A stretch of 64,000 nt of DNA from Hyalangium minutum (GTDB lineage: Bacteria > Myxococcota > Myxococcia > Myxococcales > Myxococcaceae): the NCBI RefSeq assembly GCF_000737315.1, contig NZ_JMCB01000026.1, forward strand, positions 1-64,000, given 5' to 3'. The notes beneath the pieces were generated by a model. That model searched no databases. It was given only the letters and a program-made list of their open reading frames with translations, and had not been told where the DNA came from. Made by a program: the position numbers and the translations under genes. This document shows, one piece after another, positions 1,571 to 58,400 of this stretch. Numbering within the stretch: position 1 is the first letter of the stretch; each line of letters opens with the position of its first letter.

Positions 1571-4123
1571 TCAGAGGCCGTTGGGGACGATGGTCAGGGT
1601 CGAGGAACCCTTGTTGGTCAAGATGAGATCGACGTAGCCGTCAGCATTCATGTCGGCAATGGCAATCGCGTTGAGACCGGGGGAACTGCCCGTCGTGACG
1701 AGCGTCCCGGAGGTGAACGTTCCCGTGCCGCTGCCCGTCATGGGACGAACGCCACCCGTCGTCGCGGTGACCAGGATGTACGCATCCAGCTTCCCATCGC
1801 CATTGAAGTCACTGGCGACGACGCCCAAGGCCGAGTTGGCGACGGCCGAGGCTCCTGTAGCCGAGTCCACACCGGATGCCACGGTCCCGTTGCCAGCGCC
1901 TTTGAAGACGTACAGGTACGCTCCAGCCGCACCATTCGAGAGGATGTCGAGATTCCCGTCTCCGTCAGCGTCGCCAAAGGCAATGCCAGCCGTCTGGCCA
2001 TTTCGGCTATTGGTATAGGAAACAGGGGCCGCGAACGAAGCATTGCCTTGATTGATGAGGAGGTTGAGACGCGCCGAGGAGGGACTCGTCACGACAATGT
2101 CGGGATCGCCGTCACCATTCAGGTCTCGGCAAGCGATGGTTGACTGCACGCCGCCCGTGGAGGGGATGGCGATGAGCGGCGAGGACACGCTGAAATGACC
2201 ATCGCCGTCATTCAACAGGATGCTCACGTTGCTTGTCGTCACGCTGGTCGTCGCGATGTCGACAGCCCCATCCCCGTTGAAATCTCCCGCGCACAGGTGA
2301 ACGGATCCTGGAGCGCCGGTGGTGAAGCTCGTGAGCGTCCCGAACAGTCCAGGGGCACTCGCGCCGCGATTGAGATAAACGCTGATGCTCCCGTTCGTCG
2401 ACGACAGGTTGGTCTGGCCGTCGACCGTGACGGCATCGAGCCACCCGTCGCCGTCCACATCGGCCGCCACGACGGCATTACTCGAGAGCGGAGCGCCGGT
2501 GTAGTAATGCTCGGCCTGGACGGTGGCGTCGCGATTGCCGAAAAACACGGAGAGCGATCCGGAGGGGGTCGCGGCCGAGCCGGATTCGGCATTGGCGACC
2601 AGGATGTCGAGCTTCCCGTCGTTGTTCACGTCCGCGACTGCTGGAGCGAGCGGATTGTGCGGTGCGGGGAAGTTGATGGGCGTTCCGGGCACCTGGCCTG
2701 AGGGCGGAGTCTGACACGCTGCATTCGAGCAGATCTGACCCATATCACAAGCGTTGCTGCAAACATTGCAGTGCGCGGCGTCGCTCTGCAGGTTGACTTC
2801 GCAGCCGTCGGAGACAAGTCCGTTGCAGTCCGCGAGCGTCCCGCTGCAGCTCTGACACGTGGCCCCTTCGTAGGTAGGGGCGCATGCGCACGTGAAGCTG
2901 TTCACGCCGTCCGTGCACGTTCCGCCATTGAGGCAAGGATTGGGCGAGCACTCGTCGATGTTGGTGGCGCAGGTGGCACCCGAGTAACCGGGAGCGCATG
3001 CGCACGTGTAGCTGTTCACACCATCCGTGCACGTTCCACCGTTGAGGCAAGGATTGGGCGAGCACTCGTCGATGTTGGTGGCGCAGGTGGCGCCGGAGTA
3101 ACCGGGAGCGCATGCGCACGTGTAGCTGTTCACGCCGTCCGTGCACGTTCCGCCGTTGAGGCAAGGATTGGGTGAGCACTCGTTGATGTTGGTGGCACAG
3201 GTGGCGCCGGAGTAACCGGGAGCGCATGCGCACGTGTAGCTGTTCACGCCGTCCGTGCACGTCCCGCCGTTGAGGCACGGATTGGGCGAGCACTCGTTGA
3301 TGTTGGTGGCGCAGGTGGTGCCCGAGTAACCGGGGGCGCACTGGCACGTGTAGCTGTTCACGCCGTCCGTGCACGTTCCGCCATTGAGGCAAGGATTGGG
3401 TGAGCACTCATTGATGTTGGTAGCGCAGCCAGGGCCTGAATAACCGGGGGCGCATTGGCACGTGTAGCTGTTCACGCCGTCCGTGCACGTTCCGCCATTG
3501 AGGCAAGGGTTGGGCTGGCACTCATTGACGTCCGTGGCACAGGTCGCGCCCGAATAGCCGGGGGTGCATGCGCACGTGTAGCCATTCACGCCGTCCGTGC
3601 ACGTCCCGCCGTTGAGGCACGGATTGGACTCGCACTCGTTGACGTTGGTTTCGCAGGTAGCGCCGGAGTAACCGGGGGCGCACTGGCACGTGTAGCTGTT
3701 CACGCCGTCCGCGCAGGTTCCGCCGTTGAGGCACGGCTGGGCGGCGCAGTCATCGATGTTGGATTCGCAATTCGTTCCCGAATAACCCGTTGCACATTGA
3801 CAGGTGTAGCCATTGACGCCGTCCGTACAGGATCCGCCATTGAGGCAAGGCTGGGCGGCACAGTCGTCGACGTTCGTGCAGACGCTGGGCTCTTGAGAGC
3901 ACTTCCAGCCACTCTCGGTCAGGCACTTATTCGAGCAACCATCTCCGCCGGCCGTGTTCCCATCGTCACAAGACTCCGGGGAATCGGTAGACCCGTCGCC
4001 ACAGACCGCTTTCCCGTTGCCATCGAACGGAGGGGGGTCCTCGTGGCATCCGGTGGAGCCGAGTATCGCGGTGAAGACAAATGTCAAGCTGAAGAGGCGG
4101 AAAACTGAGCGAGCAGGCGACAT
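1571..4123 (-). CDS. Secreted/lipoprotein with Myxococcus Cys-rich repeat, 9 Ca-binding EGF-like repeats and FG-GAP/VCBS beta-propeller
   Basis: Hydrophobic N-terminus ending GSTG-C; CGDG...CDDGN...DGCS motif; 9 x 38-aa N[IV][ND]EC.PNPCLNGGTCTDGVNSYTC.C.PGYSG..C; C-terminal D[VF][ND]GDG..D[IL] repeats. Confidence 0.9.
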   Translation of the reverse strand: MSPARSVFRLFSLTFVFTAILGSTGCHEDPPPFDGNGKAVCGDGSTDSPESCDDGNTAGGDGCSNKCLTESGWKCSQEPSVCTNVDDCAAQPCLNGGSCTDGVNGYTCQCATGYSGTNCESNIDDCAAQPCLNGGTCADGVNSYTCQCAPGYSGATCETNVNECESNPCLNGGTCTDGVNGYTCACTPGYSGATCATDVNECQPNPCLNGGTCTDGVNSYTCQCAPGYSGPGCATNINECSPNPCLNGGTCTDGVNSYTCQCAPGYSGTTCATNINECSPNPCLNGGTCTDGVNSYTCACAPGYSGATCATNINECSPNPCLNGGTCTDGVNSYTCACAPGYSGATCATNIDECSPNPCLNGGTCTDGVNSYTCACAPGYSGATCATNIDECSPNPCLNGGTCTDGVNSFTCACAPTYEGATCQSCSGTLADCNGLVSDGCEVNLQSDAAHCNVCSNACDMGQICSNAACQTPPSGQVPGTPINFPAPHNPLAPAVADVNNDGKLDILVANAESGSAATPSGSLSVFFGNRDATVQAEHYYTGAPLSSNAVVAADVDGDGWLDAVTVDGQTNLSSTNGSISVYLNRGASAPGLFGTLTSFTTGAPGSVHLCAGDFNGDGAVDIATTSVTTSNVSILLNDGDGHFSVSSPLIAIPSTGGVQSTIACRDLNGDGDPDIVVTSPSSARLNLLINQGNASFAAPVSYTNSRNGQTAGIAFGDADGDGNLDILSNGAAGAYLYVFKGAGNGTVASGVDSATGASAVANSALGVVASDFNGDGKLDAYILVTATTGGVRPMTGSGTGTFTSGTLVTTGSSPGLNAIAIADMNADGYVDLILTNKGSSTLTIVPNGL
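2852..3877 (-). repeat. Nine tandem 114-bp EGF-coding repeats
   Basis: Near-identical 114-nt units are visible in the DNA (e.g. gttgaggcaaggattgggcgagcactcg); repeats 5-9 are nearly identical in protein. Confidence 0.9.
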
Positions 4124-6663: not shown

Positions 6664-7797
6664 TCACCCGCGGGCCTGTTCGGCGCGACGGGCGGGCACG
6701 CCAACATCCGTGAGCGATTCGAGCACCTCCTCCAGGGCCTCCTGCGCTCCATAGGGAACGCCCAGCCCTTCGAGGCCCGCCCGAAGATCCGCCTCCACGG
6801 CTGCCGCCGACGGATAGCGCTCCTCCGGCTGCCGCTGGAGCAACCGGCGGAGAATGGAGCGCAGCGGCTCGGCCAGCCGCTGGGTGATTTCCTCCACATC
6901 CCGCCGCGTCAACGCGGCCGCCCGCAGGATGCAGTCCTCCGCATGCTCCGGCAGCTCTGCCCGCGTGGCCATGAAGGAGGCCTCCAGCACCCGCCTCTTC
7001 ACCTGGGGCGGCAACGCCGCCTCCAGCTCCGAGGGCCGCAGGTGGCCCAGGTTGTACACATGATGCCAGGTGGCCAGCTCCAGCAGCACCAGCCCCAGCG
7101 AAAACAAATCCGAGCGCGCATCCTGCTCCTCGCCGAGCAGCGCCTCGGGTGAGCAATAGAACACGTCCCCCTGCGGACGCGGGAGCGTGGTGGCCACCCG
7201 CCCCGGCAGCAAGGAACGCGCACGAGCGAAGTCCGTCAGCAGCACCCCGCCCTCGGGGCCCAGGAAGATTCGCGCCGGGTTCACGTCCCGATGAACGATG
7301 CCCAGCGGCGCACCTGTCTCATCCGTGCACGTATGCGCATGGTGGAGAGCGCTGGCCGCCTCGGCCCCCACGTACAGACAGAATGCCGGGGACAAGACGA
7401 CCTCGCGCATCATCGACTGGTTGATCAGCGTGTTGAGCGAGGCCCCCGCCACCCGCTCGGTCACGACGTAGAGGACACCCTGGATCTCATAGGGCCCGAA
7501 GGTGCGGGCGATCTTCGGATGACGCAGGAAGGTGGCCAGCCGCGCTTCCTCGCGGAGCCGCGCGCGCATCCGGAACTGCACTTCGTCCAGGCCGGAAGCC
7601 GCGGGCAAGGTGCGGACGAGGACCTCGCGCAGGCGCTTCTTCTCCGTGCGCTCCCAGGCGGGGATGCACCGCTCTCCAACCCTCGACTGCGCCAGGTCCT
7701 GGGCCAGCGGCCGAGACAGATCCACCTCATACGACAGCTCCCCCTGGGAGAAGAGGATGACGCCCGGGATGCTCCAGCTTTGAAGAGACCTGGCCAT
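6664..7797 (-). CDS. Ser/Thr kinase-like protein (probable pseudokinase)
   Basis: HPKIART, IVHRDVNP, LLTDFAR, YCSPE, SDLFSLG; no Gly-rich loop and the beta3 Lys is replaced by Arg (VLVR). Start set at ATG 7797. Confidence 0.85.
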   Translation of the reverse strand: MARSLQSWSIPGVILFSQGELSYEVDLSRPLAQDLAQSRVGERCIPAWERTEKKRLREVLVRTLPAASGLDEVQFRMRARLREEARLATFLRHPKIARTFGPYEIQGVLYVVTERVAGASLNTLINQSMMREVVLSPAFCLYVGAEAASALHHAHTCTDETGAPLGIVHRDVNPARIFLGPEGGVLLTDFARARSLLPGRVATTLPRPQGDVFYCSPEALLGEEQDARSDLFSLGLVLLELATWHHVYNLGHLRPSELEAALPPQVKRRVLEASFMATRAELPEHAEDCILRAAALTRRDVEEITQRLAEPLRSILRRLLQRQPEERYPSAAAVEADLRAGLEGLGVPYGAQEALEEVLESLTDVGVPARRAEQARG

Positions 7798-7912
7798 GCG
7801 CAACTGCCTCCGCGCGGCGCCCAAGCGGCACCGCCCCGCGGACACGAACACGACCCAGCATGTGCTGTCAAAAGAGAACGACGCAGCAGGTAGGACGCGG
7901 CGTCCACCAGGC

Positions 7913-9691
7913 TCAGCGCCACCTCGTCACGGCCCGGGCATCGACCACTTTATCGATGATGGCATGGCCGGGCTTCGAGCCCGGATTCTTCTCCAAGCCC
8001 ACCTCGAAGCCACTACGCAACTCGATGCAGACGGGAACGGTGCTCCCATCAGGAAGGTGGGCACGGACATAGTGACCGTAGACGCGGTCCCCTGTCGTCC
8101 ACAGGTGCCCGTCCAACCGCATGTCCTCCGGCGCTTTTCCGAAGGGAAACACCAGAGACCCTGTCACGGGGCCATCCTTGACCTCCATGACGGCGTTCTC
8201 CTCGGTCTGCGCGATGCCCACCTTTTTAGGGTGCGGCCGGGTCACGTCGATCATGACGGTGGGGGTTTTGTAGTCGATATCGAGTACCCACCCGAGCGCC
8301 TTCATCGCCCGGATGGCTTCCTCAGGGCAGTCCCCAGGCTCTGGGCGTGTCTGGACACCGGAGCAGCCCGCTTGAAGCCATGCGGCAGAGGCCACGAGGA
8401 GCGCGCACCGCTCCAGCTTCGAGAGCCTGGACCGGGGTTGAGGCTTCTGGGTCTGTGGCGGAGGGGGAGCGCCGCGGGTGAGCGTGGGGGAATTGTCGGG
8501 TTGCTTCACGGAAGGGTGAGCCTCCTGCTGGGTAGGGAGCAACAAGGGTAACGGCGCGGGGCGGCTTGTCGGCTTTTCGGCCCCTGCAGGGGCTGCAGGC
8601 GGAGGGGGCGTGGCGGGCGTGTGCAGCAGGACGGTGACAGCGGCTGCCAGGATCCCCAGGGCCAGCCCCCCGGCGATGACAGGCCGCCGCCATGGCCGGC
8701 GCAAGGGGAGCGGAGCCTCCTCGACGGGCGCGGCCGCCGCTTCGGAAGGTTCGGGCGGCAGTTGCGAGGCGATGGGGTGAACGGGCGTGCCCCGCCAGTC
8801 CTCTCCCGTGAAACGCGCGAATTCCTCCAGCGGGCGCCGCGCGTCCTTCGCCGTCTGGGGCCGCTCCTCGGGATCGCGGTGGATGAGCGTCATCGCATAG
8901 CGGCTCAGCTCCTGCGGAACTCTTCCCTGAGTGGCCTGATGAGGGGTGGGAGGCTCCATCACCGCGTGCCCCAGCGGCGGCCTCCGCTCGCCGCGCGTGG
9001 GCAACGGGTCGGTGAGCACGTCATAGAGATCAGCCCCCAGCGCGAAGATGTCGTCCGTGGCCTTGAAGGTGTAACGGGCCTGCGGGTCGAGCTGGTGGGC
9101 CCTCCAGAAGCGTTGAGCCTCCGGGCTGCGGATGCGGGGTGTCCCCGGGGGCAGCGGTCCGTCCGTCAGCTCGTCGGCGGTGGCGTAGTCGGCCGCGCCA
9201 AAGTCGATGATGACCGGCTCGCCTTCCCGGGTGACCAGGATGTTCCGCAGACTCAAGTCGCGATGAAACATGTTGCGCGAGTGGATGTGCTCCAGCGCGT
9301 CGAACAGCTTGAGGAACAACACCACCACTTCATGCGGCGTCGGATGGGTCCGTTCCACCCACTGCGCCAGCGTGCAACCGTCCACGAAGTCCAGGACGAT
9401 GTAGAGAACGCCCGAGCGCGAGTCGGGCCAGCGCCCATGTGCCCACATGCGGATGATGTGGCGGTGTTGGAGCTGCTGCAGGCAGGCCACCTCCCGGCGG
9501 GCGCGTGCGTCCGTCTGCCGAGGGTCCTGGCTCCGCTCGGTCTGACAGGCCACCTTCAGCGCATACCGCTGTCCGTCCTTCTCCACCTCGTAGACAACCG
9601 CGTAGCCACCTCTGCCGATGCACCGGACGATGCGCCAGACATCCACCATCTGGCCCGGCTGGAGGTTCAAAGGATCCACTGACGCCACCAT
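7913..9691 (-). CDS. Transmembrane Ser/Thr protein kinase with C-terminal Cys-containing domain
   Basis: IGRGGYAVV, YALK, HRDLSLRN, IIDFG, RSPE, DIFALG; TM segment, Pro-rich linker, C-terminal domain. Confidence 0.9.
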   Translation of the reverse strand: MVASVDPLNLQPGQMVDVWRIVRCIGRGGYAVVYEVEKDGQRYALKVACQTERSQDPRQTDARARREVACLQQLQHRHIIRMWAHGRWPDSRSGVLYIVLDFVDGCTLAQWVERTHPTPHEVVVLFLKLFDALEHIHSRNMFHRDLSLRNILVTREGEPVIIDFGAADYATADELTDGPLPPGTPRIRSPEAQRFWRAHQLDPQARYTFKATDDIFALGADLYDVLTDPLPTRGERRPPLGHAVMEPPTPHQATQGRVPQELSRYAMTLIHRDPEERPQTAKDARRPLEEFARFTGEDWRGTPVHPIASQLPPEPSEAAAAPVEEAPLPLRRPWRRPVIAGGLALGILAAAVTVLLHTPATPPPPAAPAGAEKPTSRPAPLPLLLPTQQEAHPSVKQPDNSPTLTRGAPPPPQTQKPQPRSRLSKLERCALLVASAAWLQAGCSGVQTRPEPGDCPEEAIRAMKALGWVLDIDYKTPTVMIDVTRPHPKKVGIAQTEENAVMEVKDGPVTGSLVFPFGKAPEDMRLDGHLWTTGDRVYGHYVRAHLPDGSTVPVCIELRSGFEVGLEKNPGSKPGHAIIDKVVDARAVTRWR

Positions 9692-9713
9692 GCCGCGTAC
9701 CTCCCGCCTGTTG

Positions 9714-10628
9714 TTACAGCTTCACATTGGGAATGGACAGACAGCGGCTCCCGTCACCGTTGCACACCCGCAGGGTGTGCGGCTCCGTCAGCCGTGCTGG
9801 AGGCTGCCTCTCGGGCATCTCCACCTCGATGGCCACTGGGGAGGAGGCCCCTGGGGGAATCACGGCCTGGCCTGAGAGCACCGCGCGAGCGCGTCGCGGA
9901 GCCCCGCCTGCTGAAGGCGTCACCTCCGCCCACGCAGGCGCCCACGGCTCTCCGGCAAGGTTGCTCACATAGATGGCAGCCACGGTCCAGGTGGCCGCCC
10001 CAAACGCGTTGCACCCTGAGGCACGAAACGAACCGCTGGCTTTGAAGCACGCAGCACTCAAGTCCAGTCCTCGAATGCCGCCCTCGTCGACGACCCCTGC
10101 GAGCATAAAGGCGGCCGGGCTGAGCGTGGCGGGCCGTGCCTTCAACGCCTCCAGTTCCTGGCGCTGCGCCTCGCACCGCTCGTGCAGAGCGGACAGCTCC
10201 ACGCGGCACGCCTCGCCGGGCTGCTGCGGACGAAGAACGTTGACCACCTCATCTGCCCCTCCCGGCTGCCCGGTGAGCAGAAGCACGGCGCTGGCAGGAA
10301 ACCCCTCGCGGTAGGTGAGGCGCAGCGCCAGCCGCTCCGAGGGCCCCAGCGCCACGGCGGGAGAGAGCGTGACCGTGCGATCCCCCACATCCACCACCGC
10401 GAAGCGGGCCCGGCCTTCTACCTCGACCGCCTCCCGCACCAGGGGCGCGTCGAGGAGGAGCACCGTCACGGTGCCGGGCGCCAGGAAGATCAACGGTGAC
10501 TCGCTCGCCTGCCCCGTGAGCACGACGGAGCGCGGAGCGGAGCGCCCCACAAGCGCCGTCTGGGCAGATGCGGCAAGGGCAGCCAGCCACGTGGCGAGCG
10601 CAACAGCCAAGGTATTGGGTCGGAACAC
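9714..10628 (-). CDS. DUF2381-family protein (myxobacterial paralogous family)
   Basis: Signal peptide (ASA|Q); 'LAPGTVTVLLLDAPL...VEVEGRARF.VVDVG.RTVTL.P' and coiled-coil pattern; typical position upstream of a kinase. Confidence 0.75.
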   Translation of the reverse strand: MFRPNTLAVALATWLAALAASAQTALVGRSAPRSVVLTGQASESPLIFLAPGTVTVLLLDAPLVREAVEVEGRARFAVVDVGDRTVTLSPAVALGPSERLALRLTYREGFPASAVLLLTGQPGGADEVVNVLRPQQPGEACRVELSALHERCEAQRQELEALKARPATLSPAAFMLAGVVDEGGIRGLDLSAACFKASGSFRASGCNAFGAATWTVAAIYVSNLAGEPWAPAWAEVTPSAGGAPRRARAVLSGQAVIPPGASSPVAIEVEMPERQPPARLTEPHTLRVCNGDGSRCLSIPNVKL

Positions 10629-10735: not shown

Positions 10736-11302
10736 ATGTCCGACTTCCGCTCACGGTTTCGAGTGTTGGCGTTCCTCCTCGGAGTACTCACGGGCTGCGC
10801 CGCGAGCAGCGCGCCTGGACCTGAATCCACTGCGGTCACGACGGTCATCATCGTGCGCCACGCAGAGAAGGACCTCACGCCCGGCCTGGCCGATCCCGGC
10901 CTCACCCCGGAGGGCCAGCAGCGCGCCCAGGCGTTGCGCGACACGCTGCGGAAGTCTCCCATCTCCGCCCTGTACACCACGGACACGGCCCGCACCCGGG
11001 CCACCCTCGCTCCGCTGGCGGCCAGCCGGAAGCTCGAGCCGCAAGTCTATGACGCCAAGCAGCCCGCCCTGTGGGTCCAGCGTCTGCGCAAGCAGCACCG
11101 TGGCCAAACGGTCGTGGTCGTGGGGCACGCCAACACCCTGCTCTCCTTGATCGACGCGCTGGGCGCCCCTCGGCCCGTGCCCGAGCTGTCCGACGCGGAT
11201 TACGACTACCTGTTCGAGGTGAAGCTCCCTCCAGAAGGCCGAGCCTCCGCCCGAGCCAGCCACTACGGCGCTCCGGCCCATACCGGATCCGGGATGCGTT
11301 GA
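10736..11302 (+). CDS. Histidine phosphatase (phosphoglycerate mutase/SixA-like) lipoprotein
   Basis: LTG-C lipobox; IIVRHAEK, LTPEGQQRA, RTRAT and VVVVGH motifs. Confidence 0.85.
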   Translation: MSDFRSRFRVLAFLLGVLTGCAASSAPGPESTAVTTVIIVRHAEKDLTPGLADPGLTPEGQQRAQALRDTLRKSPISALYTTDTARTRATLAPLAASRKLEPQVYDAKQPALWVQRLRKQHRGQTVVVVGHANTLLSLIDALGAPRPVPELSDADYDYLFEVKLPPEGRASARASHYGAPAHTGSGMR

Positions 11303-11369
11303 CCGCGTCGAAGCCTCCTCCCTACGCTCGCGCCCTCACGGCGCAGAGCCTTGTGAAGAAAGAGGAGTC

Positions 11370-13760
11370 ATGACGAACGCCAATTCCCGCAGTGGTGGGT
11401 CCAGTGTGAAGCGCGCCTTCCAGTTCGGTGAGAGGCCCTTCCTCAAGGGGGCCGGCACCCACTCACCCGAGGCTTGGTTCCTGGGCACCAAGGCCGAGAA
11501 CGTCGAGGAGCTCGAGCGGCTGGTGGTCGAGGCCATCCGCGATCACGCCTTCTGGCGGCGGAACTTCCACCCGCAGGATCCCACGCACATCACCGAGCAA
11601 TCCAAGCGGCACCCGGCGTACCTCCACGCGATGGACTCGCTGAAGGACAACTTCCGCTCGCTCCTGTCGTTCCTCAAGAAGTCCGTCCCCTTCTTCAGCG
11701 GCCGGTACCAAGGCCACATGAACTGGGACACCACGCTCCCCAGCGTGCTCGGTTACTTCGCGGCCATGCTCTACAACCCCAACAACGTCGCGTTCGAGGG
11801 GTCTACCGCCACCACGATGCTCGAGATGATCGTGGGAGACGATCTGTGCCGGATGCTCGGCTACAGCATCCCCGACGAGGACGCCATCTCCAAGGGAGCC
11901 ATCCGGCCCTGGGGGCACATCACCTGCGGTGGCACCATCGCGAACATCGAGGCCATCTGGTCCGCCCGGAACCTCAAGCTCTATCCCCTCGCGCTGCGCG
12001 AGGCCCTCAAGGCCGAGCCCTCCCTCGCGGCGGCGCGCGCGTTCACCGTCACCACGTGCGAGGGGAAGACCGAGCCGCTGTCATCGCTCGACACGTGGTC
12101 ACTCCTCAACCTCAAGGTCGATGACATCCTCGCCCTACCCGGGCGCTTGACGGCCGAGCACGGAATCTCGGGCGACACCATCACCGCGGCCCTGTCGAAG
12201 CACTCGGTCCAGCACCTCGGCGTCCTCGAGTTCTCGAGGCGCTACCTGGGGGATGTGAAGACCTCTCCGGTGGTGCTGGTCCCCGCGACGAAGCACTACT
12301 CGTTCCCCAAGGCGGCGGCGGTCCTCGGCCTCGGCTCGGCGAACGTGATTGACGTGCCCGTGGATCGCGACGCGCGGATGAGCCTCCCGGAGCTCGAGCG
12401 CATCTTGAGAGAGTGCCTCGTGGCGCGGAGGCCGGTCTACACGGTGGTCGGTGTGATTGGGAGCACGGAAGAGAGCGCGGTGGATCCGCTGAAGGGGATC
12501 CTCGAGCTGCGCCACGCCCTGCAGAAGAGCGGGCTGTCGTTCACGGTCCACGCGGACGGCGCCTGGGGCGGGTATTTCGCCTCCGTGCTGCGCCCCGATG
12601 AGGGTCCGCGCAAGAAGGAGACACCGCATGACCCGCCGCCCGAGGTGGGGATGAGCGGGTACGTGACGGCCCAGCTCTCGGCGCTCTCCAGGGCCGACTC
12701 CATCACGGTGGATCCGCATAAGTCGGGCTACATCCCGTACCCGGCAGGGGCGCTCTGCTACCGGAACGGGGCCATGCGCGACATGGTGACGTTCAAGGCG
12801 CCCTATATCGTCCACGGCGACGAGGAGCCCGCGGTGGGCATCTACGGACTGGAGGGCTCGAAGCCGGGGGCCGCGGTGGCGGCGGTGTACCTGAGCCACA
12901 AAGTGATTCGGCCCACGCGGAGCGGCTACGGGCAGATCCACAGGAGGGCGCTGTTCAACTGCAAGCGCTTCTACGCGCGGCTCCTGTGCATGGCTGGGCC
13001 AGAGGACCGGTTCGTGATTGTCCCGGTCCCTCGGCTCCAGGCGGAGATCGCTGGCGGCGACGTCGAGGCCGATGTGCAGTTCATCCGCGAGCGCATCCAC
13101 CGGAGGAGCGAAGAGGAGCTCCTGTCGGATCCCGAGGCCATGGCGCTCCTGCCCGAGCTCGGGCCCGATCAGAACATCCTGACCTACGCCGTGAACTTCA
13201 GGAACCCGGACGGCTCGCTCAACACGGATCTGGAGCTGGCCAACCGGCTGAACCGGGCCATCTATGATCTGCTGAGCATCGATCCCGGGGACGAGATCTA
13301 CGGCTACGGGATGATCGTGAGCACGACCGACTTCAGCGAGGAGCACTACGGGAAGACGTTCATCGAGGACTACAAGAAGCGCCTCGGTGTCGCGGCGTCG
13401 CCGGGCTCCACGGTGACAGTGCTCCGGTCCACGACGATGGCCCCGTGGCTCCTGTCGACCCCCGAAGGAAACTTCCTGGACGTGCTGGAGTTCGAGCTCC
13501 GCGACGCGATCCTGAAGTCGATGATGCGGGACTCGATGCTCCAGATCTTCAATGAGATCGACACGAACAAGGACGGCGTCCTGGACGTGCCGGAGGTGAT
13601 GGGCAAGTTCCGCGAGAAGGGCTACCACGACGAGGAGATCGACGCGTTCTTGCAGATGTGCGACCTCGACAAGAGCGGAACGGTGTCCATGGAGGAGTTC
13701 CTGGGCGCGTTCTCGCACTTCGTGGCCAAGTCGAAGCTCGCGGGCGGCGCCAGCGCTTGA
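11370..13760 (+). CDS. Group II PLP-dependent amino-acid decarboxylase fused to two EF-hands
   Basis: YQGHM, HITCGGTIAN, KHYSFPKAA, HADGAWGGY, DSITVDPHK (PLP Lys), LEGSKPG; C-terminal DTNKDGVLDVPE and DLDKSGTVSMEE. Confidence 0.92.
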   Translation: MTNANSRSGGSSVKRAFQFGERPFLKGAGTHSPEAWFLGTKAENVEELERLVVEAIRDHAFWRRNFHPQDPTHITEQSKRHPAYLHAMDSLKDNFRSLLSFLKKSVPFFSGRYQGHMNWDTTLPSVLGYFAAMLYNPNNVAFEGSTATTMLEMIVGDDLCRMLGYSIPDEDAISKGAIRPWGHITCGGTIANIEAIWSARNLKLYPLALREALKAEPSLAAARAFTVTTCEGKTEPLSSLDTWSLLNLKVDDILALPGRLTAEHGISGDTITAALSKHSVQHLGVLEFSRRYLGDVKTSPVVLVPATKHYSFPKAAAVLGLGSANVIDVPVDRDARMSLPELERILRECLVARRPVYTVVGVIGSTEESAVDPLKGILELRHALQKSGLSFTVHADGAWGGYFASVLRPDEGPRKKETPHDPPPEVGMSGYVTAQLSALSRADSITVDPHKSGYIPYPAGALCYRNGAMRDMVTFKAPYIVHGDEEPAVGIYGLEGSKPGAAVAAVYLSHKVIRPTRSGYGQIHRRALFNCKRFYARLLCMAGPEDRFVIVPVPRLQAEIAGGDVEADVQFIRERIHRRSEEELLSDPEAMALLPELGPDQNILTYAVNFRNPDGSLNTDLELANRLNRAIYDLLSIDPGDEIYGYGMIVSTTDFSEEHYGKTFIEDYKKRLGVAASPGSTVTVLRSTTMAPWLLSTPEGNFLDVLEFELRDAILKSMMRDSMLQIFNEIDTNKDGVLDVPEVMGKFREKGYHDEEIDAFLQMCDLDKSGTVSMEEFLGAFSHFVAKSKLAGGASA

Positions 13761-13784
13761 CCGGCGGTCTGAGCGGCAGCAGGG

Positions 13785-13818
13785 GGCTCTCGGTGGCGAA
13801 TCGGTGCCACCGAGAGCC
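13785..13818. terminator. Hairpin between convergent genes (bidirectional terminator candidate)
   Basis: GGCTCTCGGTGGC-8 nt-GCCACCGAGAGCC: 13-bp perfect stem. Confidence 0.7.
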
Positions 13819-13836
13819 TTCAGACCGGCCGCCGGA

Positions 13837-49428: not shown

Positions 49429-52400
49429 TCAAGGCTGCTCGATCTCGATCACCTTGGGCTTCACCTTGACGATGGTGAAGTCGACGCGGCGGTTCTGCTC
49501 GCGGCCCTTGTTGGTCTTGTTGGAGGCAATGGGCTTGGCCTCGCCGTAGCCCACGGCCTCGAGCCGGCTGGCCTCGACGCCCTCCAGCACGAGCCGGTCC
49601 CGGACGGCTTCGGCGCGGTTGCGGGAGAGGACCAGGTTGGCGCCGTCCTCGCCCTTGTCATCGGTGTGGCCCTCCACGCGGACCAGCTCGATCTGCGGGT
49701 TGGCCTTGAGCACCTGAGACACCTGGCGCAGCAGGGGGAAGGACTTGGGGAGGATGGTGTTCTTGTTGTTGAGGAAGAAGATCTTATCGAGGATGACGAC
49801 CTTCTCGCCCGCCACGAGCACCTTCACCTTGCCCTTGTCCGGGCAGCCGTCCTCGTCCTTCACGCCGTTGATGGTCTCCGGCTCCGTGGGGCACTTGTCG
49901 TCCGCGTCCGCGACGCCGTCGTGGTCATTGTCCGGGTCCGGGCAGCCGTCCTCGTCCTGGAACCCGTCCTTGTCCTCGGCGGCCTGAGGGCAGCGATCCT
50001 TGTCGTCCGTGATTCCATCGCCATCCGTGTCGGCGGGAGGCAGCACGTCCGGGCAGCCATCCTCGTCCTGGAAGCCGTTGAGCGTCTCCGGCTCGTTGGG
50101 GCACTTGTCGGCCGTGTCCAGGATGCCGTCGTTGTCGTTGTCCGGGTCCGCGCAGCCGTCCTCGTCCTGGAAGCCATCCATGTCCTCGGGGCCGAGGGCG
50201 CAGACGGGCTTGGACGGGGGGATGACCTCTACCTTGGTCTTGATGTTGGGGTCAGCCACCACCTCGGGCGGGGGCACGGGCTTGGCCTCCACCTTCGGCG
50301 CGGGCTGCTCAGAGCGGGAGGTGGGAGCCACGTAGGCCAGGCCCGCGAACACGCGGATGCCCGGCGTGCCGTAGCCCTGCGAGAGGCCGGGGCCACCGCC
50401 CAGGTGCGCGGCGAGCGAGTCCGTGACGCGGTACTTCACCGTGGCCAACAGCTCCAGCGGCTTCTCCTCGCTGCCCTTCTGCCCCAGGCCCATCGCGCCC
50501 ACCAGGGTGGCGCCCACGGAGAGCCCGCGGCCGCTCACCTGGAAGGGAACCTCGCCGCCCAGGCCGTAGGTCAGCTCGTTGCCGACGACCAGCCCGCGCA
50601 GTTCCTGCTCGGAGCGGAGGTTCATGCCCACGTTGGCCAGCACGCGAATGCCCGTGCTGCTGTTCCACTCGCCGAGCAGCTTCGGGCGGACGGAGAAGCC
50701 GCCGCCGAGGAAGTTCTCGCCCCCCGTGGGCAGGTGCAGAGGCAGTGCCGCACCCAGGGAGAGCCCGCCTGCGGAGAACAGGTTCGCCTTCGGCACCAGG
50801 CGCAGGTCGCCCAGGCCCGTCTTGCCCGCGCCCTCGCTGAAGTCCGGCACGCCTTCAGGGGCGGACTCGGAGCTCTGCGAGGTGATGGGGATGGCCAGGC
50901 CCAGCTCGAAGCGATCGAGGAAGGCGATGGCTGCCATCACGTCCACCGTGAGCTGGCTCGACACCAGCTTGTAGACGACGGCGTCCTTGCGCGGATCCAG
51001 AACGGACAGCGGATCCGTGGCGTAGTTCACTGACAGGCCCGCGTTCCAGCCCAGGTGCTTGTTCACCTTCGGGCTGTGCAGGCCCAGCACGTCGTAGGCG
51101 CCCGGCCCCGGCTTGAACTGCTGCACGTCGATCTTCGTGGACGCGGTGCTGGAGGTTGTCTGCGCGTGCGCAGGAGCCGTCAGGAAGACGGCCAGCACGC
51201 CCAGCAGCCCCCAGGCCCCCGCGGCCGAGGCCTTCACCGCCGCCCGGCGACGCCGCAGCAGCGGCAGGCCGAGCAGCAGCAGCAGCGGCACGAAGCTGGT
51301 GCCCGTCGAGGCGCAACCGCCGCCCACGAACAGGAAGTCGTCGGTGTCATCGAGCGGGTTGGTTTTGCCCTCAACCTCCTCACCATCGGTCGCACCACCG
51401 CCGTCGGTGTCGGGGTTGCAAGGATCGGTCTCGTCCGCATCCCTGTGGCCGTCGTGGTTCTTATCCTCGTCGCCGTCCTTGAGGCCGTCGTCGTCGGAAT
51501 CCTCGTCGAGCGGAGAAGTACAGGTCCCATTCTCGATCTCGTCGGGGATGCCGTCGCCGTCGGTGTCGTTACCCTGGACGACCCGGACGGTCACCGTGGC
51601 GGTATCCGTGCCGCCATTGCCATCCGAGATCGTGTACTCGAAGGTCACGTCGCCCGTGAAACCCTCGGCCGGAGTGAACTGCACCGCCGAGCCATCCGTG
51701 GCCACCTTCACTGTGCCGCTCGGGGCCGACGAGGTCACCGCCGTCACCGTCAGCGTCTCGCCCGTATCCGGAGCGATCGAGTCGTTGGCCAGCACGTCCA
51801 GCCGGTTGCCCGTCGAGTTGAAGGGCACCGTGAACATGTCATCCAGGGCGACGGGATCATCGTTGACCGGGGTCACCGTGACAGTGACCGTGGCCGTGTC
51901 CGTGCCGCCGTTGCCATCATCGATCGTGTACGTGAACGTCACGTCGCCGTTGAAGTTAGGCGTCGGCGTGAAGGTCACCACGCCGTTGTCCAGCTTCACC
52001 GTGCCGCCCGAGGTCGGCTGCGTCACCGACGTCACCGTCAGCGTCTCGCCCGTGTCCGGCGCGAACGTGTCGTTGTCGAGCACGGCCAGCACGTTGTCCA
52101 CGCTGTCCTCGGCCACCGAGAACGTGTCGTCCGCCGCGTCCGGCGGGTTGTTGGGCGGCAGGCCCACGCGCACCCTCACCGAGGCCGTGTCCGTCCCGCC
52201 GTTGCCATCCGAGATGGTGTAGTCGAACGTCGTGATCCCGCTGAAGCCTGCGGCCGGCGTGAAGCTCACCACGCCGCCCGTCAGCGTCACCGTGCCGTTG
52301 GCCGGCTGGGTCACCGCCGTCACCGTCAGCGTCTCGCCCGTGTCCGGCGCGAACGTGTCGTTGGCCAGCACGTCCAGCACCGTGGCGCCACTGTCCGCGG

Positions 52401-55400
52401 CCACGTTGAAGACGTCATCCACCGCATCCGGGTTGTCGTTGACTGGCGTGACCGTGACCGCGACGGCGGCCGTGTCGTTGCCACCGTTGCCGTCCGAGAT
52501 GGAGTAGTCGAACGTCACCGTGCCGTTGAAGTTGGCCGTCGGCGTGAAGGTCACCACGCCGCCCGTCAGCGTCACCGTGCCGCCCGTGGCCGGCTGGGTC
52601 ACCGCCGTCACCGTCAGCGTCTCCCCCGCATCCGGGAACGCCGTGTCGTTGGCCAGCACGTCCAGCACGTTGTCCGTGCTGTCCTCGGCCACCGAGAACG
52701 TGTCGTTCACCGCATCCGGCGGGTTGTTGGGTGCCATGCCCACGCGCACCGCGACGGTGGCGGTGTCAGTGCCGCCATTGCCGTCCGAGAGGGTGTACGT
52801 GAACGTCGTGGTCCCCACGAAGCCCGCGGCCGGCGTGAAGCTCACCACTCCACCGGAGAGCGTCACCGTGCCGCTTGGGGCCGGCTGAGTCACCGCCGTC
52901 ACCGTCAGCGTCTCGCCCACGTCCGGCGCGAACGTGTCGTTGGCCAGCACATCCAGCACCGTGGCACCACTGTCTTGCGCCACGGAGAAGGAGTCGTTCA
53001 CCGCGTCGGGCGGATCATTGACCGGGGTCACCGTGACAGTGACCGTGGCCGTGTCCGTGCCGTTGTTGCCGTCATTCACCGTGTACGTGAACGTCGTGGT
53101 GCCGTTGAAGTTGGCCGTCGGCGTGAAGAGCACCGTGCCGGTGTTGGTCAGCGTCACCGAGCCACCGGTGGCCGGCTGAGTCACCGCCGTCACCGCGAGC
53201 GTCTCCCCCACATCCGGCGTGGTCGTGTCGTTGGCCAACACGTCCAGCGGGTTGTCCGTGCTGTCCTCGGCCACCGAGAACGTGTCGTTGCGAGCATCCG
53301 GCGGGTTGTTCGTCTCCGTGACGACGACCGTGACGGTGGCCGTGGCCGTACCGCCGTTGCCGTCCTCGATCGTGTACGAGAAGGACACCGTCCCGGCGAA
53401 GCCCGTCGTCGGCTGGAAGCGGACCAAGCCACCGCTCAGCGACACCGAGCCACCCGTGGCCGGCTGCGTCACCGCCGTCACCGTCAGCGTCTCGCCCACG
53501 TCCGGCTCCGTGCTGTCGTTGGCCAGCACATTGAGCACCGTGGCCGGGCTGTTGCGGCTCACCGTGAAGCTGTCGTCCCGGGCCGTGGGCGGGTTGTTCG
53601 AACCGGCCACCCTCACCGTGACGGTCGCCGTGTCCGTGCCGCCGTTGCCGTCCGAGATGGTGTACGTGAACGTCGTGGTCCCGTTGAAGCCCGCGGCCGG
53701 CGTGAAGCTCACCACGCCGCCCGTCAGCGTCACCGTACCGTTGGCCGGCTGAGTCACCGCCGTCACCGTCAGCGTCTCGCCCACGTCCGGCGCAATCCGG
53801 TCGTTGGCGAGCACATCCAGCACGCGGGGCGGGCTGTTCACCACCACCTCGAAGCTGTCATCCACCGCATCCGGGTTGTCGTTGACCGGCGTGACGGTGA
53901 CCGTGACCCGCGCGGAGTCCGTACCGTTGTTGCCATCCGAGAGGGTGTACGTGAACGTCGTGGTGCCGTTGAAGTTGGGCGCCGGCGTGAAGCTCACCAC
54001 GCCGCCCGTCAGCGTCACCGTGCCGTGGGCCGGCTGGGACACCGCCGTCACCGTCAGCGTCTCGCCCGTGTCCGGCGCGAACGTGTCGTTGGCCAGCACG
54101 TCGAACGTCGTGGCGCCGCTGTCCTCGTCCACCGTGAAGCTGTCCTCCACGGCATCCGGCGGGTTGTTCGTGCCGAACACCGACACGGTCACCGTGGCCG
54201 TGTCCGTGCCGCCGTTGCCATCCGAGAGGGTGTACGTGAACGTCGTGACGCCGCTGTAGCCAGGCGTCGGCGTGAAGCGCACCACCCCGTCGATCAGCGT
54301 CACCGAGCCGTTGGCCGACTGGGTGATCTGCGTGATGGTCAGCGTCTCGGGCGCATCCGGCAGGTACGTGTCGTTGAGCAGCACGTCCAGCGGCGTGTTC
54401 GAGCTGTCCACCGCCACCATGAAGCTGTCGTTGACGGCATCCGGCGGATCGTTCGCCGGGTCTACGGTCATCGTCACCGTCGCCGAGTCCGTGCCACCGT
54501 GGCCATCGGAGATCGTATACGTGAACGTCGTGGTGCCGAAGAAGTTGGGCGCCGGAGCGAAGCGCACGAGCCCCCCGCTGAGCGTCACCGTGCCGTTGGC
54601 CGGCTGAGTCACCGCCGTCACCGTCAGCGTCTCACCCGTGTCGGGCAACGCCGTGTCGTTGCCCAGCACGTTCACCACCGTGAGCGGATAGTCCTCGGTC
54701 GTCGAGAAGCTGTCGTCGTTCGCGGTGGGCGGATCGTTGACCGGCGTCACCGTCACCGTGACGACCGCCGTGTCGCTGGCAGTGCCGCCGTCGGAGAGCG
54801 TGTACGTGAACGTCACCGTGCCGTCGAAGTTGGACAGCGGCGTGAACCGCACCACTCCGCCCGACAGCGTCACCGTGCCGCTGGACGGCTGTGTCACCGC
54901 GGTGATGACCGGCGTGTCGCACTGGTCGTTGGCCGTCACGTTCAGCGCTGTGGAGCCGCTGTCCTCGGCCACCGTGAAGGTGTCATCCACGGCGTCGCAG
55001 TCGGGCACCGCCGTCACGGTCACGGTCACGATGGCCGTGTCCGTGCCGCCGTTGCCATCCGAGATGGCGTAGCTGAACGTCACCGTGCCGTTGTAGTTGG
55101 GCGCGGGCGTGAAGCTGACGTTGCTCGACGTGAACGTCACCGAGCCACCCGTGGCCGGCTGAGTCACCGCCGTGATGGTCAGCGTCTCGCCCGTGTCCGG
55201 AGCCGTCGTATCGTTGGCCAGCACGTCCAGCACCGTGGCGCCGCTGTCCTCGGCCACTGTGTAGTTGTCGTCGTTGGCCACCGGCGGGCGGTTCGCCCCG
55301 GAGACCGTCACCGTCACCGTGGCCGTGTCCGTGCCGCCGTTGCCGTCGGAGATCGTGTACGTGAACGTCGTGGTGCCCGAGAAGCCTGCGGCCGGAGTGA

Positions 55401-58400
55401 AGCTCACGCCCGTGGCCGTGAAGGTCACCGTGCCATTGGCCGGCTGAGTCACCGCGGTGATGGTCAGCGTCTCATTCGTGTCCGGCGCGATCGTGTCGTT
55501 GAACAGCACGTCCAGCACGCGGGCGGAGCTGTTCACCGCCACCGTGAAGTTGTCGTCGCGGGCATCCGGGTTGTCGTTCACCGGCGTCACCGTGACGGTC
55601 ACCGTGGCCGTGTCCGTGCCGCCGTTGCCGTCCGAGATCGTATACGTGAACGTCGTGGTGCCGTTGAAGTTGGGTGCCGGCGTGAAGCTGACGCTGGTGG
55701 TCGTGTTGGCCACCGCCGTGCCGCCCACCGCCGGCTGGGTCACCGCCGTCACCGTCAGCGTCTCGCCCGTGTCCGGCGCGAACGTGTCGTTGGCCAGCAC
55801 GTTGACCGTCGTGGCCAGGCTGTCCTCGGCCACCGTGAGCACGTCATCCACGGCATCCGGAGGATCGTTGACCGGCGTCACCGTCACCGTGACGGTGGCC
55901 GTATCCGTGCCGCCGTTGCCGTCGGACACCGTGTACGTGAACATCACCGTGCCATTGAAGTTGGGCGCCGGTGTGAAGCGAACCACGCCGCCCGACAACG
56001 TCACCGCGCCGCCCGTGGCCGGCTGGGTCACCGCCGTCACCGTCAGCGTCTCACCCGTGTCCGGGCCAAGCGTGTCGTTGGCCAGCACGCTCAGCACCGC
56101 GGGTAGGCTGTCCTCGGCCACCGAGAAGGTGTCGTCGTTGGCCTCGGGCGGATCGTTCACCGGCGTCACCGTCACCGTGACGGTCGCCGTGGCCGTACCG
56201 CCGTTGCCATCCGAGACGGTGTACGTGAACGAGACGGTGCCGTTGAAGTTGGCCGCAGGCGTGAACGTCACCCCGGTGGCCGTGAAGGTCACCGAGCCAC
56301 TGGCCGGCGGAGTCACCGCCGTCACCGACAGGGTCTCTCCGATGTCCGGCGCCGTGGTGTCGTTGGCCAGCACGTTGAAGGTCGAGGGACCGCTGTCCTC
56401 GGCCACCGTGTAGCTGTCGTCGTTGGCCACCGGCGGGCGGTTGTTGCTGCCCACCAGGACCGTCACCGTGGCCGTTGCCGTGCCGCCGTTGCCATCCGAG
56501 ATCCGGTACGTGAACGTCGTCACACCCACGAAGCCCGCAGACGGAGTGAAGGTGACGTTGGCTCCCGTAAAGCTCACCGTGCCGTTGGCCGGCTGAGTCA
56601 CCGCGATGATGGTCAGCGTCTCGCCCACGTCCGGCACGATCGTGTCGTTGGCCAGCACGTTGATCACCGTGGGGCCGCTGTCCGCGGGCACCTGGGAGGT
56701 GTCGTTGTTGGCCGTGGGGTTGTCGTTCACCGGCGTCACGTTCACCGTCACCGTGGCCGTGTCGTTGCCCCCGTTGCCGTCGTTGATGCTGTAGGTGAAC
56801 GAGGTGGTCCCGAAGAAGTTGGCCGCGGGCGTGAACGTCACCCCGGTGGCCGTGAAGGTCACCGAGCCGTTGGCCGGCTGCGTCACCGCCGTGATGGTCA
56901 GCGTCTCGTTGTCGTCCGGCAGCGACGAGTCGTTGAAGAGCACGTCCATCGCCGTGGCGCCGCTGTCCTCGGTCACCGTGAAGGTGTCGTCGCTGGCCGT
57001 CGGGTCGTCGTTCGACGGCGTCACCGTGACGGTGACCGTCGCAGAGTCCGTGCCGCCGTTGCCGTCCGAGATCCGGTACGTGAACGAGGTGGTGCCGTTG
57101 AAGTTCGCGTCCGGGGTGAAGTTCAGGGTCGCGCCCGAGAAGCTCACCGAGCCACCGGCCGGCTGCGTCGCCGAGCTGATGGTCAGCGTCTCACCCGTGT
57201 CTGGCGCGATCGTGTCGTTGGCCAGCACATTGAGCACCGTGGAGCCGCTGTCCTCGGCCACCGTGAAGCTGTCGTCGTTGGCGTCCGGCGGGTCGTTCAC
57301 CGGCGTCACCGTCACCAGCACTTGGGCCGTGTCCGTGGAGGTGCCGTCGGACACCGTGTACGAGAACGTCGTGGTGCCGTTGAAGTTGGCCGTCGGTGTG
57401 AACTCGACCACGTTGCCCGTGAGGGTCACCGTGCCGTTGGCCGGCTGCGTCACCGCCGTGATGGTCAGCGTCTCGCCCACATCCGGGGCCGTGGTGTCGT
57501 TGGCCAGCACGTCCAGGGTCGTGGCCACGATGTCCTCGGGCACCGTGAAGGTGTCGTCGCTGGCCGTGGGAGGATCGTTGACCGGCGTCACCGTCACCGT
57601 GACGGTCGCCGTATCCGTGGTGGTGCCGTCGGACACCGTGTACGAGAACGTCGAGGTCCCGTTGAAGCCCGGCGTCGGCGTGAAGCTCACCACGCCGCCC
57701 GCCAGCGTCACCGTGCCACCCACCACCGGCTGGGTCACCGCCGTCACCGAGAGCGTCTCGCCCGTGTCCGGCGCCGTGGTGTCGTTGGCCAGCACGTCGA
57801 GCGGAGTGGCCGGGCTGCTCTCAGCCACCACGAAGGTGTCGTCCACCGCGTCCGGAGGATCGTTGACCGGCGTCACCGTCACCGTGACGGTCGCCGTATC
57901 CGTGCCGCCGTTGCCGTCGGACACCGTGTACGTGAACGTCGTGGTGCCATTGAAGTTGGGCGCGGGCGTGAAGCTGACGTTGAACTGCGTCATCGTCACC
58001 GTGCCGCCCGTGGGCTGGGTGACGGCGGTGATGGTCAGCGTCTCGGTGGTCTCCGGCCCCGTCGAGTCGTTGGCCAGCACGTTGAACACCGTGGAGGCGC
58101 TGTCCTCGCCCACCGTGAAGCTGTCATCCACGGCATCCGGCGGATCGTTCACCGGCGTCACGTTCACCGTCACCGAGGCCGTGTCCGTGCCGCCCCGGCC
58201 GTCCGAGATGGTGTACGAGAACGTCACCACGCCGTTGAAGTTCGGGCCCGGCGTAAACGTCACGCCCGTGGCCGTGAAGGTCACCGTGCCGTTGGCCGGC
58301 TGGGTCACCGCTGTCACCGACAGGGTCTCGCCCACGTCCGGCGCGAACGTGTCGTTGGCCAGCACGTCCAACACCGTGGGACCGCTGTCCTCGTCCACCG

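Follow-up and report, generated by a model that had tools for sequence, protein, structure and literature searches.

A predicted aromatic amino-acid decarboxylase from Hyalangium minutum with a C-terminal EF-hand pair: a candidate for direct control of a bacterial enzyme by Ca2+

Introduction

Can a bacterial metabolic enzyme carry a Ca2+ sensor as part of its own polypeptide chain? This question is raised by a gene at the beginning of contig NZ_JMCB01000026.1 of the myxobacterium Hyalangium minutum (RefSeq assembly GCF_000737315.1), of which positions 1 to 64,000 of the forward strand were analysed (henceforth the window; ~68% G+C). At positions 11370-13760 of its forward strand, the program-made list of open reading frames (ORFs) contains a single ORF of 796 residues with an ATG start, which an earlier note, made from the sequence alone, had interpreted as a pyridoxal phosphate (PLP)-dependent decarboxylase with a fused "calmodulin-like" EF-hand pair. 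The interpretation that we favour, with a probability of about 0.6, is that the product decarboxylates aromatic L-amino acids in the cytoplasm and that Ca2+ bound to its own EF-hand pair controls its activity or stability. In the following, we describe the two parts of the protein and the distribution of their fusion, and then discuss how Ca2+ might act and which other roles the tail could have.

Results and Discussion

What kind of enzyme carries the tail? In a HMMER sequence search of the PDB, residues 34-720 matched residues 24-719 of the chain 6EBN, which is the non-canonical aromatic amino-acid decarboxylase of the fungus Psilocybe cubensis (PcncAAAD), with an E-value of 1.3e-164, and the tyrosine decarboxylases 5HSI (Lactobacillus) and 7CWX (Enterococcus) were matched with E-values of ~1e-87. 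When the AlphaFold2 model was compared to known structures with Foldseek, 6EBN was again the top match (42% identity), followed by 5HSJ and 7CWY. The Pfam model Pyridoxal_deC (PF00282) scores 52.5 bits at a curated cut-off of 27, and a tyr_de_CO2_C domain follows in the C-terminal part of the catalytic body (coordinates of all features are collected in Table 1). The lysine of the DPHK motif, Lys451, as well as His309, Asp396 and Tyr457 are invariant across 121 aligned sequences. By comparison with group II enzymes, we take His309 to stack on the PLP ring, and Asp396 presumably pairs with the pyridine nitrogen of the cofactor. Judged from these alignments, the catalytic apparatus is intact, and the ORF, the Pfam assignments and the aligned catalytic residues bear out the intact group II decarboxylase with a DPHK motif that the earlier note had seen.

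The surroundings of the substrate pocket can be compared to the fungal enzyme as well. Tyr479 takes the place of Tyr471, the catalytic tyrosine in the catalytic loop of PcncAAAD (PMC13062060). In the rim helix, Val140, Ala141, Phe142 and Glu143 are kept in 119-120 of the 121 sequences, and the first two (119/121) are identical to Val131 and Ala132 of PcncAAAD, which provide hydrophobic surroundings for aromatic substrates (PMC13062060). In the lid loop, Ser636 and Asp641/Glu642 align with Ser632 and Glu637/Glu638, i.e. with positions of the fungal Ca2+ site A (HMMER alignment), and these residues are conserved among the nearer bacterial relatives, no matter whether they possess the EF-hand pair (EF-bearing) or lack it (EF-less). 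An aromatic L-amino-acid decarboxylase is the best call for the enzyme because the complete set of catalytic residues coincides with aromatic-pocket rim residues that are identical to those of PcncAAAD, and an aromatic substrate would thus be expected. The nearest NCBIfam model for the protein is the tyrosine decarboxylase equivalog TIGR03811, but the score of 350.2 bits at a cut-off of 905.3 rules out a membership in this Enterococcus-type equivalog group, and the protein is a relative only.

The tail behind the catalytic body consists of an EF-hand pair. Pfam EF-hand_7 (PF13499) covers residues 722-781 with 45.7 bits at a cut-off of 30 (E 8.3e-12), and EF-hand_1 reaches 37.8 bits at a cut-off of 25.4. 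The loops DTNKDGVLDVPE and DLDKSGTVSMEE have 12 residues each, with oxygen ligands at positions 1, 3, 5 and 12, a glycine at position 6 and a hydrophobic residue at position 8, and they begin and end exactly where the earlier note had placed two canonical EF loops. In 102 EF-bearing homologues, which stem from two phyla and from some metagenome assemblies, Asp1, Asn3, Leu8 and Glu12 of loop 1 are without exception, and Asp5 and Gly6 are found in 101 each. Loop 2 is more permissive at some positions: Asp1 is kept in 99 of the 102, position 3 is Asp, Asn or Ser in 101 (with one Thr), position 5 is Asp, Ser or Asn in all, Ser9 occurs in 98 and Glu12 again in all, and Gly6 in just 61. A glutamate at position 12 is typical of Ca2+-selective sites. 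Hydrophobic residues are also conserved along the pair (Phe727, Phe747, Phe760, Leu/Trp761, Phe777, Phe781 and Phe784). With both sets of ligands in place, the tail would bind two Ca2+ ions. A relaxed EF-loop pattern has four matches in the six-frame translation of the 64-kb window, compared to a mean of 0.17 in shuffled sequences. Two of the four are the decarboxylase loops, which lie in one frame at a distance of 22 residues; of the other two, one is in an antisense frame and one in a thrombospondin-type repeat of an unrelated giant surface protein.

As predicted by AlphaFold2 for the full-length protein and for the tail alone, the tail forms two helix-loop-helix units that are joined by a short beta bridge (residues 737-739 and 771-773), which agrees with the helix-loop-helix arrangement proposed in the earlier note. 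In both models, the last helix of the catalytic body continues without interruption into the entering helix of EF-hand 1, and EF-less relatives end inside this helix or just past it. The AlphaFold2 output was a monomer with confidence values and secondary structure, and any docking of the EF-hand pair on the catalytic body is a proposal. According to Foldseek, the tail-only model superposes at ~2-3 Å on Ca2+-loaded lobes of troponin C, centrin, calmodulin, calcium-dependent protein kinases (CDPKs) and the mitochondrial ATP-Mg/Pi carrier SCaMC. Among PDB sequences, the C-lobe of troponin C is the best match of the tail, and the regulatory domain of a CDPK is matched as well. The tail is one EF-hand pair and thus equals one calmodulin lobe with two sites, rather than a four-site calmodulin; the label "calmodulin-like" thus says too much and has to be narrowed to a single lobe, which is most similar to the C-lobe of troponin C and the CDPK regulatory domain. 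Other identities of the tail were considered and dismissed: the lanthanide-binding lanmodulin is ruled out by 12.6 bits for the LanM model at a cut-off of 135, the type III effector XopAW by 19.6 bits at a cut-off of 120, and the score for SPARC_Ca_bdg (22.8 at a cut-off of 22) reflects merely a generic EF-hand overlap with SPARC.

How widespread is the fusion? The homologue search listed 120 matches, of which about 100 have 770-817 residues and precomputed EF-hand domains. Among the matches listed, EF-bearing homologues are found in Polyangium, Sorangium and Nannocystis (64-81% identity), in the cyanobacteria Scytonema, Nostoc, Microcoleus, Okeania, Waterburya and Sphaerospermopsis (62-68%) and in a metagenome-assembled genome (MAG) of Methyloceanibacter (61%), and the closest one, 98% identical, comes from a sequencing-run assembly. 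The full-length homologues (58-98% identity) share their start and end positions with the 796-residue protein. A locus scan with one genome per GTDB species was evaluated for the best 80 loci, and 27 of these encode the EF tail. Complete chromosomes (Sorangium, Nannocystis, Scytonema) are represented among the 27, as are MAGs that bear the labels Hyalangium (92%) and Kofleriaceae (87%). Two diverged types of the gene are found in Sorangium genomes. In two Nannocystis loci (L022 and L024), the open frame extends ~830 nt upstream of the conserved start, which probably reflects a mere lack of stop codons in high-G+C DNA, although an N-terminal extension is possible.

The earlier note had not recognized the architecture as characterized, and a full-text search for literature on a bacterial EF-hand decarboxylase indeed retrieved no paper; decarboxylases are also absent from a review on Ca2+-binding proteins of bacteria that appeared in 2023 (PMC10574481). 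The fusion is nevertheless present in the databases, where Polyangia and cyanobacteria contribute more than 100 clusters that bear generic names such as "pyridoxal-dependent decarboxylase", "EF-hand domain-containing protein" or "Osteonectin Ca binding region-containing protein". As it is already catalogued in this way, the gene model is unstudied rather than new.

Selection on the tail and the relationships of the catalytic bodies give some indications of the history of the fusion. Compared to six myxobacterial orthologues, the ratio of nonsynonymous to synonymous substitution rates (dN/dS) is 0.20-0.46 for the tail, calculated from 68 codons only, and 0.14-0.20 for the core, and by this measure the tail is under purifying selection that is somewhat relaxed. 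In a core-only neighbour-joining tree, which was built quickly from distances and deserves a cautious reading, the EF-bearing sequences group together with one exception, L028 from Oscillatoria sp. SIO1A7. This sequence is EF-bearing with more divergent loops (DTDKSNSIERNE and DINNDEHISLDE) and stands beside an EF-less cyanobacterial clade; it may represent an ancestral state that preceded the loss of the tail. Relatives from many other phyla (45-66% identity) end at about residues 720-730 and have no tail. A stand-alone close relative or donor of the tail was not found with phmmer among 1.84 billion representatives; the hits were C-terminal fragments of the same fusion family (38-86% identity), and the rest were multi-EF-hand proteins of ~30% identity. 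The core tree would fit a history in which the tail was gained once, long ago, the whole fused gene passed between phyla, and the tail was lost at least once. At the same junction, the locus L047 of a Prochloraceae MAG (~7500-9850) continues with a LysM domain (Pfam E 1.4e-5) instead of an EF-hand pair, and going by the sequence this position has received a third type of appendage.

The EF-less sister clade (P0093-P0120 group; L026, L027 and L029) differs from the EF-bearing enzymes in more than the tail. At the position of Tyr479, which is Tyr in 84% of the EF-bearing homologues, all 19 members listed have Val (APVVFHG vs APYIVHG), and further differences are Asp for Gly187, His for Phe403 and Val for Thr688. 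This nearest EF-less clade probably differs in chemistry or substrate because Val or Phe replaces the catalytic-loop Tyr and Val replaces Thr688; the exchanges suggest either a different reaction, possibly similar to that of an aldehyde synthase, or a different substrate. Scytonema NIES-4073 possesses both forms, the EF-bearing and the EF-less one.

How could Ca2+ act on such an enzyme? The best guide is PcncAAAD, whose mechanistic details are taken here from a paper of 2026 (PMC13062060). PcncAAAD is activated by Ca2+ and loses its activity when the appendage is removed, and a Ca2+ ion at its main Ca2+ site, site A at the junction of core and appendage, is bound by Gln629 (via its backbone), Ser632 and Glu638 of the core and by Asp971 of the appendage, thereby holding a 17-residue lid loop (Phe631-Leu647) over the substrate-capping rim helix (PMC13062060). 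The earlier note had mentioned the Psilocybe enzyme as being Ca2+-activated through a different appended domain, and this is correct, but the comparison is more than an analogy, as PcncAAAD is homologous to the catalytic body and closer to it than any other protein of solved structure. Both proteins share the scaffold over ~690 residues with the DPHK motif, the catalytic-loop Tyr, the rim helix (NPNNVAFE) and a lid loop with a Ser and an acidic pair, which includes the core-side ligands of site A (Ser636 and Glu642, together with Asp641). Moreover, the Ca2+-binding domain starts at the same junction, i.e. at Met718 in the fungal protein and at about residue 719 here. The appendages themselves are entirely different. 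In PcncAAAD, 296 residues form a double-beta-barrel with two non-EF metal sites, one of which is shared with the core, whereas the bacterial enzyme carries a canonical EF-hand pair of ~70 residues with self-contained sites; the double-beta-barrel with site B and the Asp971-Asp973 half of site A are absent, and the alignment with 6EBN stops at 719. The fusion junction is the same in the fungal and bacterial enzymes, and it would therefore appear that fungi and bacteria attached unrelated Ca2+-binding domains to one scaffold at the same point. Ca2+ dependence has been shown for the eukaryotic enzyme, and for the bacterial one we infer it. The homology to PcncAAAD and the shared junction make a control by Ca2+ more plausible than the earlier note could argue.

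On this basis, the H. minutum protein would be a homodimeric PLP enzyme of the [quoted passage not shown] family that may produce an arylalkylamine, e.g. tyramine, phenethylamine or tryptamine, and in which the EF-hand pair would functionally substitute for the unrelated double-beta-barrel domain of the fungal enzyme. In the Ca2+-bound state, the pair would pack on the catalytic body and stabilize the lid loop and the rim helix over the substrate pocket, so that the enzyme would be active, more active or more stable with Ca2+ and weak without it. The binding of Ca2+, the direction of the activation, the docking at lid and rim, the aromatic nature of the substrate and a role of the product in signalling are all predicted. 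Since we see no signal peptide in the sequence, the enzyme should be cytoplasmic, and the EF sensor would therefore see cytoplasmic Ca2+.

Several related systems can be compared. The tyrosine decarboxylases of L. brevis and E. faecalis (5HSI, 7CWX) share the long group II fold including tyr_de_CO2_C and use aromatic amino acids, but they are only ~30% identical and have neither an EF-hand nor the acidic pair of the lid loop; to our knowledge, they are not controlled by Ca2+. The EF-less siblings have ~700-740 residues with a core that is 45-68% identical, and they include the second copy of Scytonema NIES-4073 and proteins of Myxococcus xanthus, Chitinophaga and genomes of the Roseobacter group, the nearer ones with the same lid and rim motifs as the EF-bearing enzyme. 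Plant glutamate decarboxylase is also a group II PLP enzyme whose amine output is coupled to Ca2+ by an EF-hand protein at the C-terminus; in that case, a separate calmodulin acts in trans on an autoinhibitory peptide, and the sequence is distant (TIGR01788, 30.6 bits). CDPKs of plants and apicomplexans as well as SCaMC resemble the decarboxylase in having EF lobes that are joined by a helix and act intramolecularly, and their regulatory domains rank among the top matches of the tail in both sequence and structure, but these proteins are eukaryotic, have four EF-hands rather than two, and are kinases or carriers and not PLP enzymes.

Several observations weigh against a Ca2+-controlled aromatic decarboxylase. 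The tail is modelled with a pLDDT (predicted local distance difference test) of ~75-85, which is lower than that of the core, and the model is poor in the N-terminal and rim regions and at the dimer interface. The sequence does not reveal the substrate, the score remains far below the tyrosine decarboxylase cut-off (350 vs 905), and Tyr479 is absent from some EF-bearing members. EF-less relatives with the same acidic residues in the lid loop are common, and for this reason the scaffold generally appears to need no appended domain. An interface signature could not be defined either: positions 634 and 647 of the lid loop differ between EF-bearing and EF-less forms, but L028 combines an EF-hand pair with residues of the EF-less type, so that this signature was rejected and the difference looks phylogenetic. 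Finally, the best sequence match of the tail, the C-lobe of troponin C, would be more in keeping with a structural role than with switching, as this is the "structural" lobe that holds Ca2+/Mg2+ constitutively.

What alternatives to a Ca2+ switch are conceivable? The last-mentioned match leads directly to a high-affinity Ca2+ (or Mg2+) site that is always occupied and serves folding, stability or the dimer interface without any switching. Such a purely structural site is the main rival, possible if rather unlikely. It would be in line with the fact that the action of Ca2+ in PcncAAAD has been termed "structure-related" (PMC13062060), and with the structural nature of many Ca2+ sites in bacterial enzymes (review PMC10574481). 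What it leaves unexplained is why, of any stable cap that could have served, it is an EF-hand pair with two canonical loops that has been retained across two phyla, and close relatives work without a tail. Besides, the glutamate at position 12 of both loops is the residue expected for Ca2+ selectivity. The EF-hand pair could also open when Ca2+ binds, clamp a helix of another protein or of a membrane partner and thereby recruit or localize the enzyme with little effect on catalysis. Lobes of calmodulin, centrin and troponin C classically work in this way, and the tail finds its best structural matches among them; in addition, hydrophobic residues are conserved along the pair. The same residues are also required for the core of an EF lobe, however, there is no conserved neighbouring gene that could encode the partner, and the rigid continuous helix together with the fungal precedent favours an intramolecular target, all of which makes such a module distinctly improbable.

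Since EF-hands are rare on bacterial metabolic enzymes, we also considered that the tail might stem from an error of assembly or annotation, or might have decayed and lost its Ca2+ binding. No support for this was found, and it can practically be discounted, as the fusion is encoded by one ORF in complete genomes of three genera (Sorangium, Nannocystis, Scytonema) and recurs in more than 100 protein clusters, the ligand residues are kept in both loops, dN/dS is below 0.5, and the Pfam scores exceed their cut-offs. The control of activity or stability by Ca2+ on the enzyme's own EF-hand pair thus remains the reading that we prefer.

Gene and genomic context

The gene is preceded by a Shine-Dalgarno-like sequence and followed by a hairpin that lies between convergent stop codons (Table 1). 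The intergenic region 13761-13836 folds with -53.9 kcal/mol (z = -5.8), and the hairpin is probably a bidirectional terminator without a T tract; as it has no T tract, it was missed by the consensus scan for promoters and terminators around the decarboxylase gene, which found nothing.

Table 1. Features of the decarboxylase gene, its product and its upstream surroundings in the window (aa, amino-acid residues of the 796-aa protein; positions in nucleotides of the window)
Feature	Position	Strand	Basis or remark
Ser/Thr protein kinases	6664-7851, 7913-9691	-	then DUF2381 protein, 9714-10628
Histidine-phosphatase-superfamily (His_Phos_1) predicted lipoprotein, N-terminus LTGC	10736-11302	+	67 nt upstream of the decarboxylase gene
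Shine-Dalgarno-like GAGGAG	11362-11367	+	2 nt 5' of ATG; read in the sequence
Complete coding sequence, PLP decarboxylase with C-terminal EF-hand pair	11370-13760	+	796 aa plus stop
N-terminal extension, aa 1-33	11370-11468	+	poorly conserved in alignment; pLDDT ~28-31, predicted disordered
Catalytic body, aa 34-718	11469-13523	+	homologous to PcncAAAD N-terminal domain and Enterococcus/Lactobacillus tyrosine decarboxylase
Rim helix VAFEG, aa 140-144 (PcncAAAD Val131-Ala135)	11787-11801	+	HMMER alignment
His309	12294-12296	+	aligned with L. brevis tyrosine decarboxylase His241; invariant in 121/121
Asp396, Asp of the H-A-D-x-A-W-G-G motif	12555-12557	+	aligned with 6EBN and 5HSI; invariant in 121/121
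DPHK motif, aa 448-451, with Lys451 as PLP Schiff-base lysine	12711-12722	+	aligned with DPHK of 6EBN and 5HSI
Tyr479 (PcncAAAD catalytic-loop Tyr471)	12804-12806	+	alignment
tyr_de_CO2_C domain (PF21391), aa 593-696	13146-13457	+	E 1.9e-11, 44.5 bits, cut-off 27.2
Lid loop LSIDPGDEIYGYGMIV, aa 635-650 (PcncAAAD Phe631-Leu647)	13272-13319	+	alignment, conservation
Continuous helix, aa 702-730, last core helix to entering helix of EF-hand 1	13473-13559	+	AlphaFold2, both models
EF-hand pair, aa 719-786	13524-13727	+	Pfam, PDB sequence matches, Foldseek
EF loop 1 DTNKDGVLDVPE, aa 731-742	13560-13595	+	sequence, homologue alignment
EF loop 2 DLDKSGTVSMEE, aa 765-776	13662-13697	+	sequence, homologue alignment
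G+C-rich 17-bp perfect hairpin between convergent stop codons (13760, 13837)	13782-13821	.	sequence reading, fold

Myxobacterial hallmarks adjoin the gene, namely a DUF2381 protein, two Ser/Thr kinases and an EGF/FG-GAP repeat protein, and its further neighbours are a pirin and, downstream, a convergent gene for a secreted repeat protein of 1019 residues. A conserved operon or biosynthetic cluster was ruled out, as a tblastn comparison of six neighbours in the window with 80 related loci gave just promiscuous Ser/Thr-kinase similarity, and the His_Phos_1 gene was found next to none of the decarboxylase homologues in these 80 loci. An all-against-all clustering of the ORFs within 6 kb in the 27 EF-bearing loci also revealed just within-genus synteny. 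As the neighbours are not conserved and a hairpin lies between the convergent stops, the decarboxylase gene looks stand-alone, and its context gives no hint to a pathway. In seven other loci, kinase ORFs likewise occur at less than 8 kb from the decarboxylase gene, which is probably coincidental, since kinases are abundant in these genomes.

Two other genes of the window, both on the reverse strand, may be mentioned for their domain composition. The ORF 49429-63951 encodes a giant protein of 4840 residues with more than 40 tandem repeats of ~100 residues (VNDPP...TFTYTISDGNGGTDTATVTVTV, cadherin/VCBS-like), a hydrophobic segment, thrombospondin-type-3-like DxDxDG repeats with one relaxed EF-loop match at 50107-50142, and an OmpA-like C-terminus; its product is probably a Ca2+-binding surface adhesin. 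The gene at 1571-4123 encodes a protein of 850 residues with nine EGF-like domains (Pfam E 5e-76) and FG-GAP repeats, an architecture that is eukaryote-like and extracellular and that is unusual in bacteria outside the myxobacteria.

Conclusions

Ca2+ signalling in bacteria is widely suspected, but very few cytoplasmic effector enzymes have been identified, and the EF-hand decarboxylase is, on the strength of its sequence, a good candidate for such a direct target. The enzyme would be soluble, its reaction would be easy to assay, and its EF-hand pair would be attached by a rigid helix, and the question of whether Ca2+ acts on bacterial metabolism as a second messenger would thus become testable with one recombinant protein. 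For practical purposes, a decarboxylase of this small size that handles aromatic amino acids and can be switched by Ca2+ would be of use in the production of arylalkylamines. In terms of evolution, the family would constitute a natural experiment in convergence, in which one scaffold gained control by Ca2+ twice, in case of the bacteria as predicted here, at the same junction and with unrelated domains.

The fusion is conserved in lineages for which Ca2+ transients and multicellularity are being discussed, i.e. in filamentous cyanobacteria and polyangial myxobacteria. It is therefore tempting, albeit speculative and on balance unlikely, to imagine that cytoplasmic Ca2+ transients switch the enzyme on and that the aromatic monoamine serves these multicellular or social bacteria as a diffusible intercellular or developmental signal. 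If this were true, the enzyme would be a transducer in a single protein, with Ca2+ as input and a biogenic amine as output, that evolved on a decarboxylase scaffold which fungi independently made Ca2+-dependent by means of an unrelated domain.

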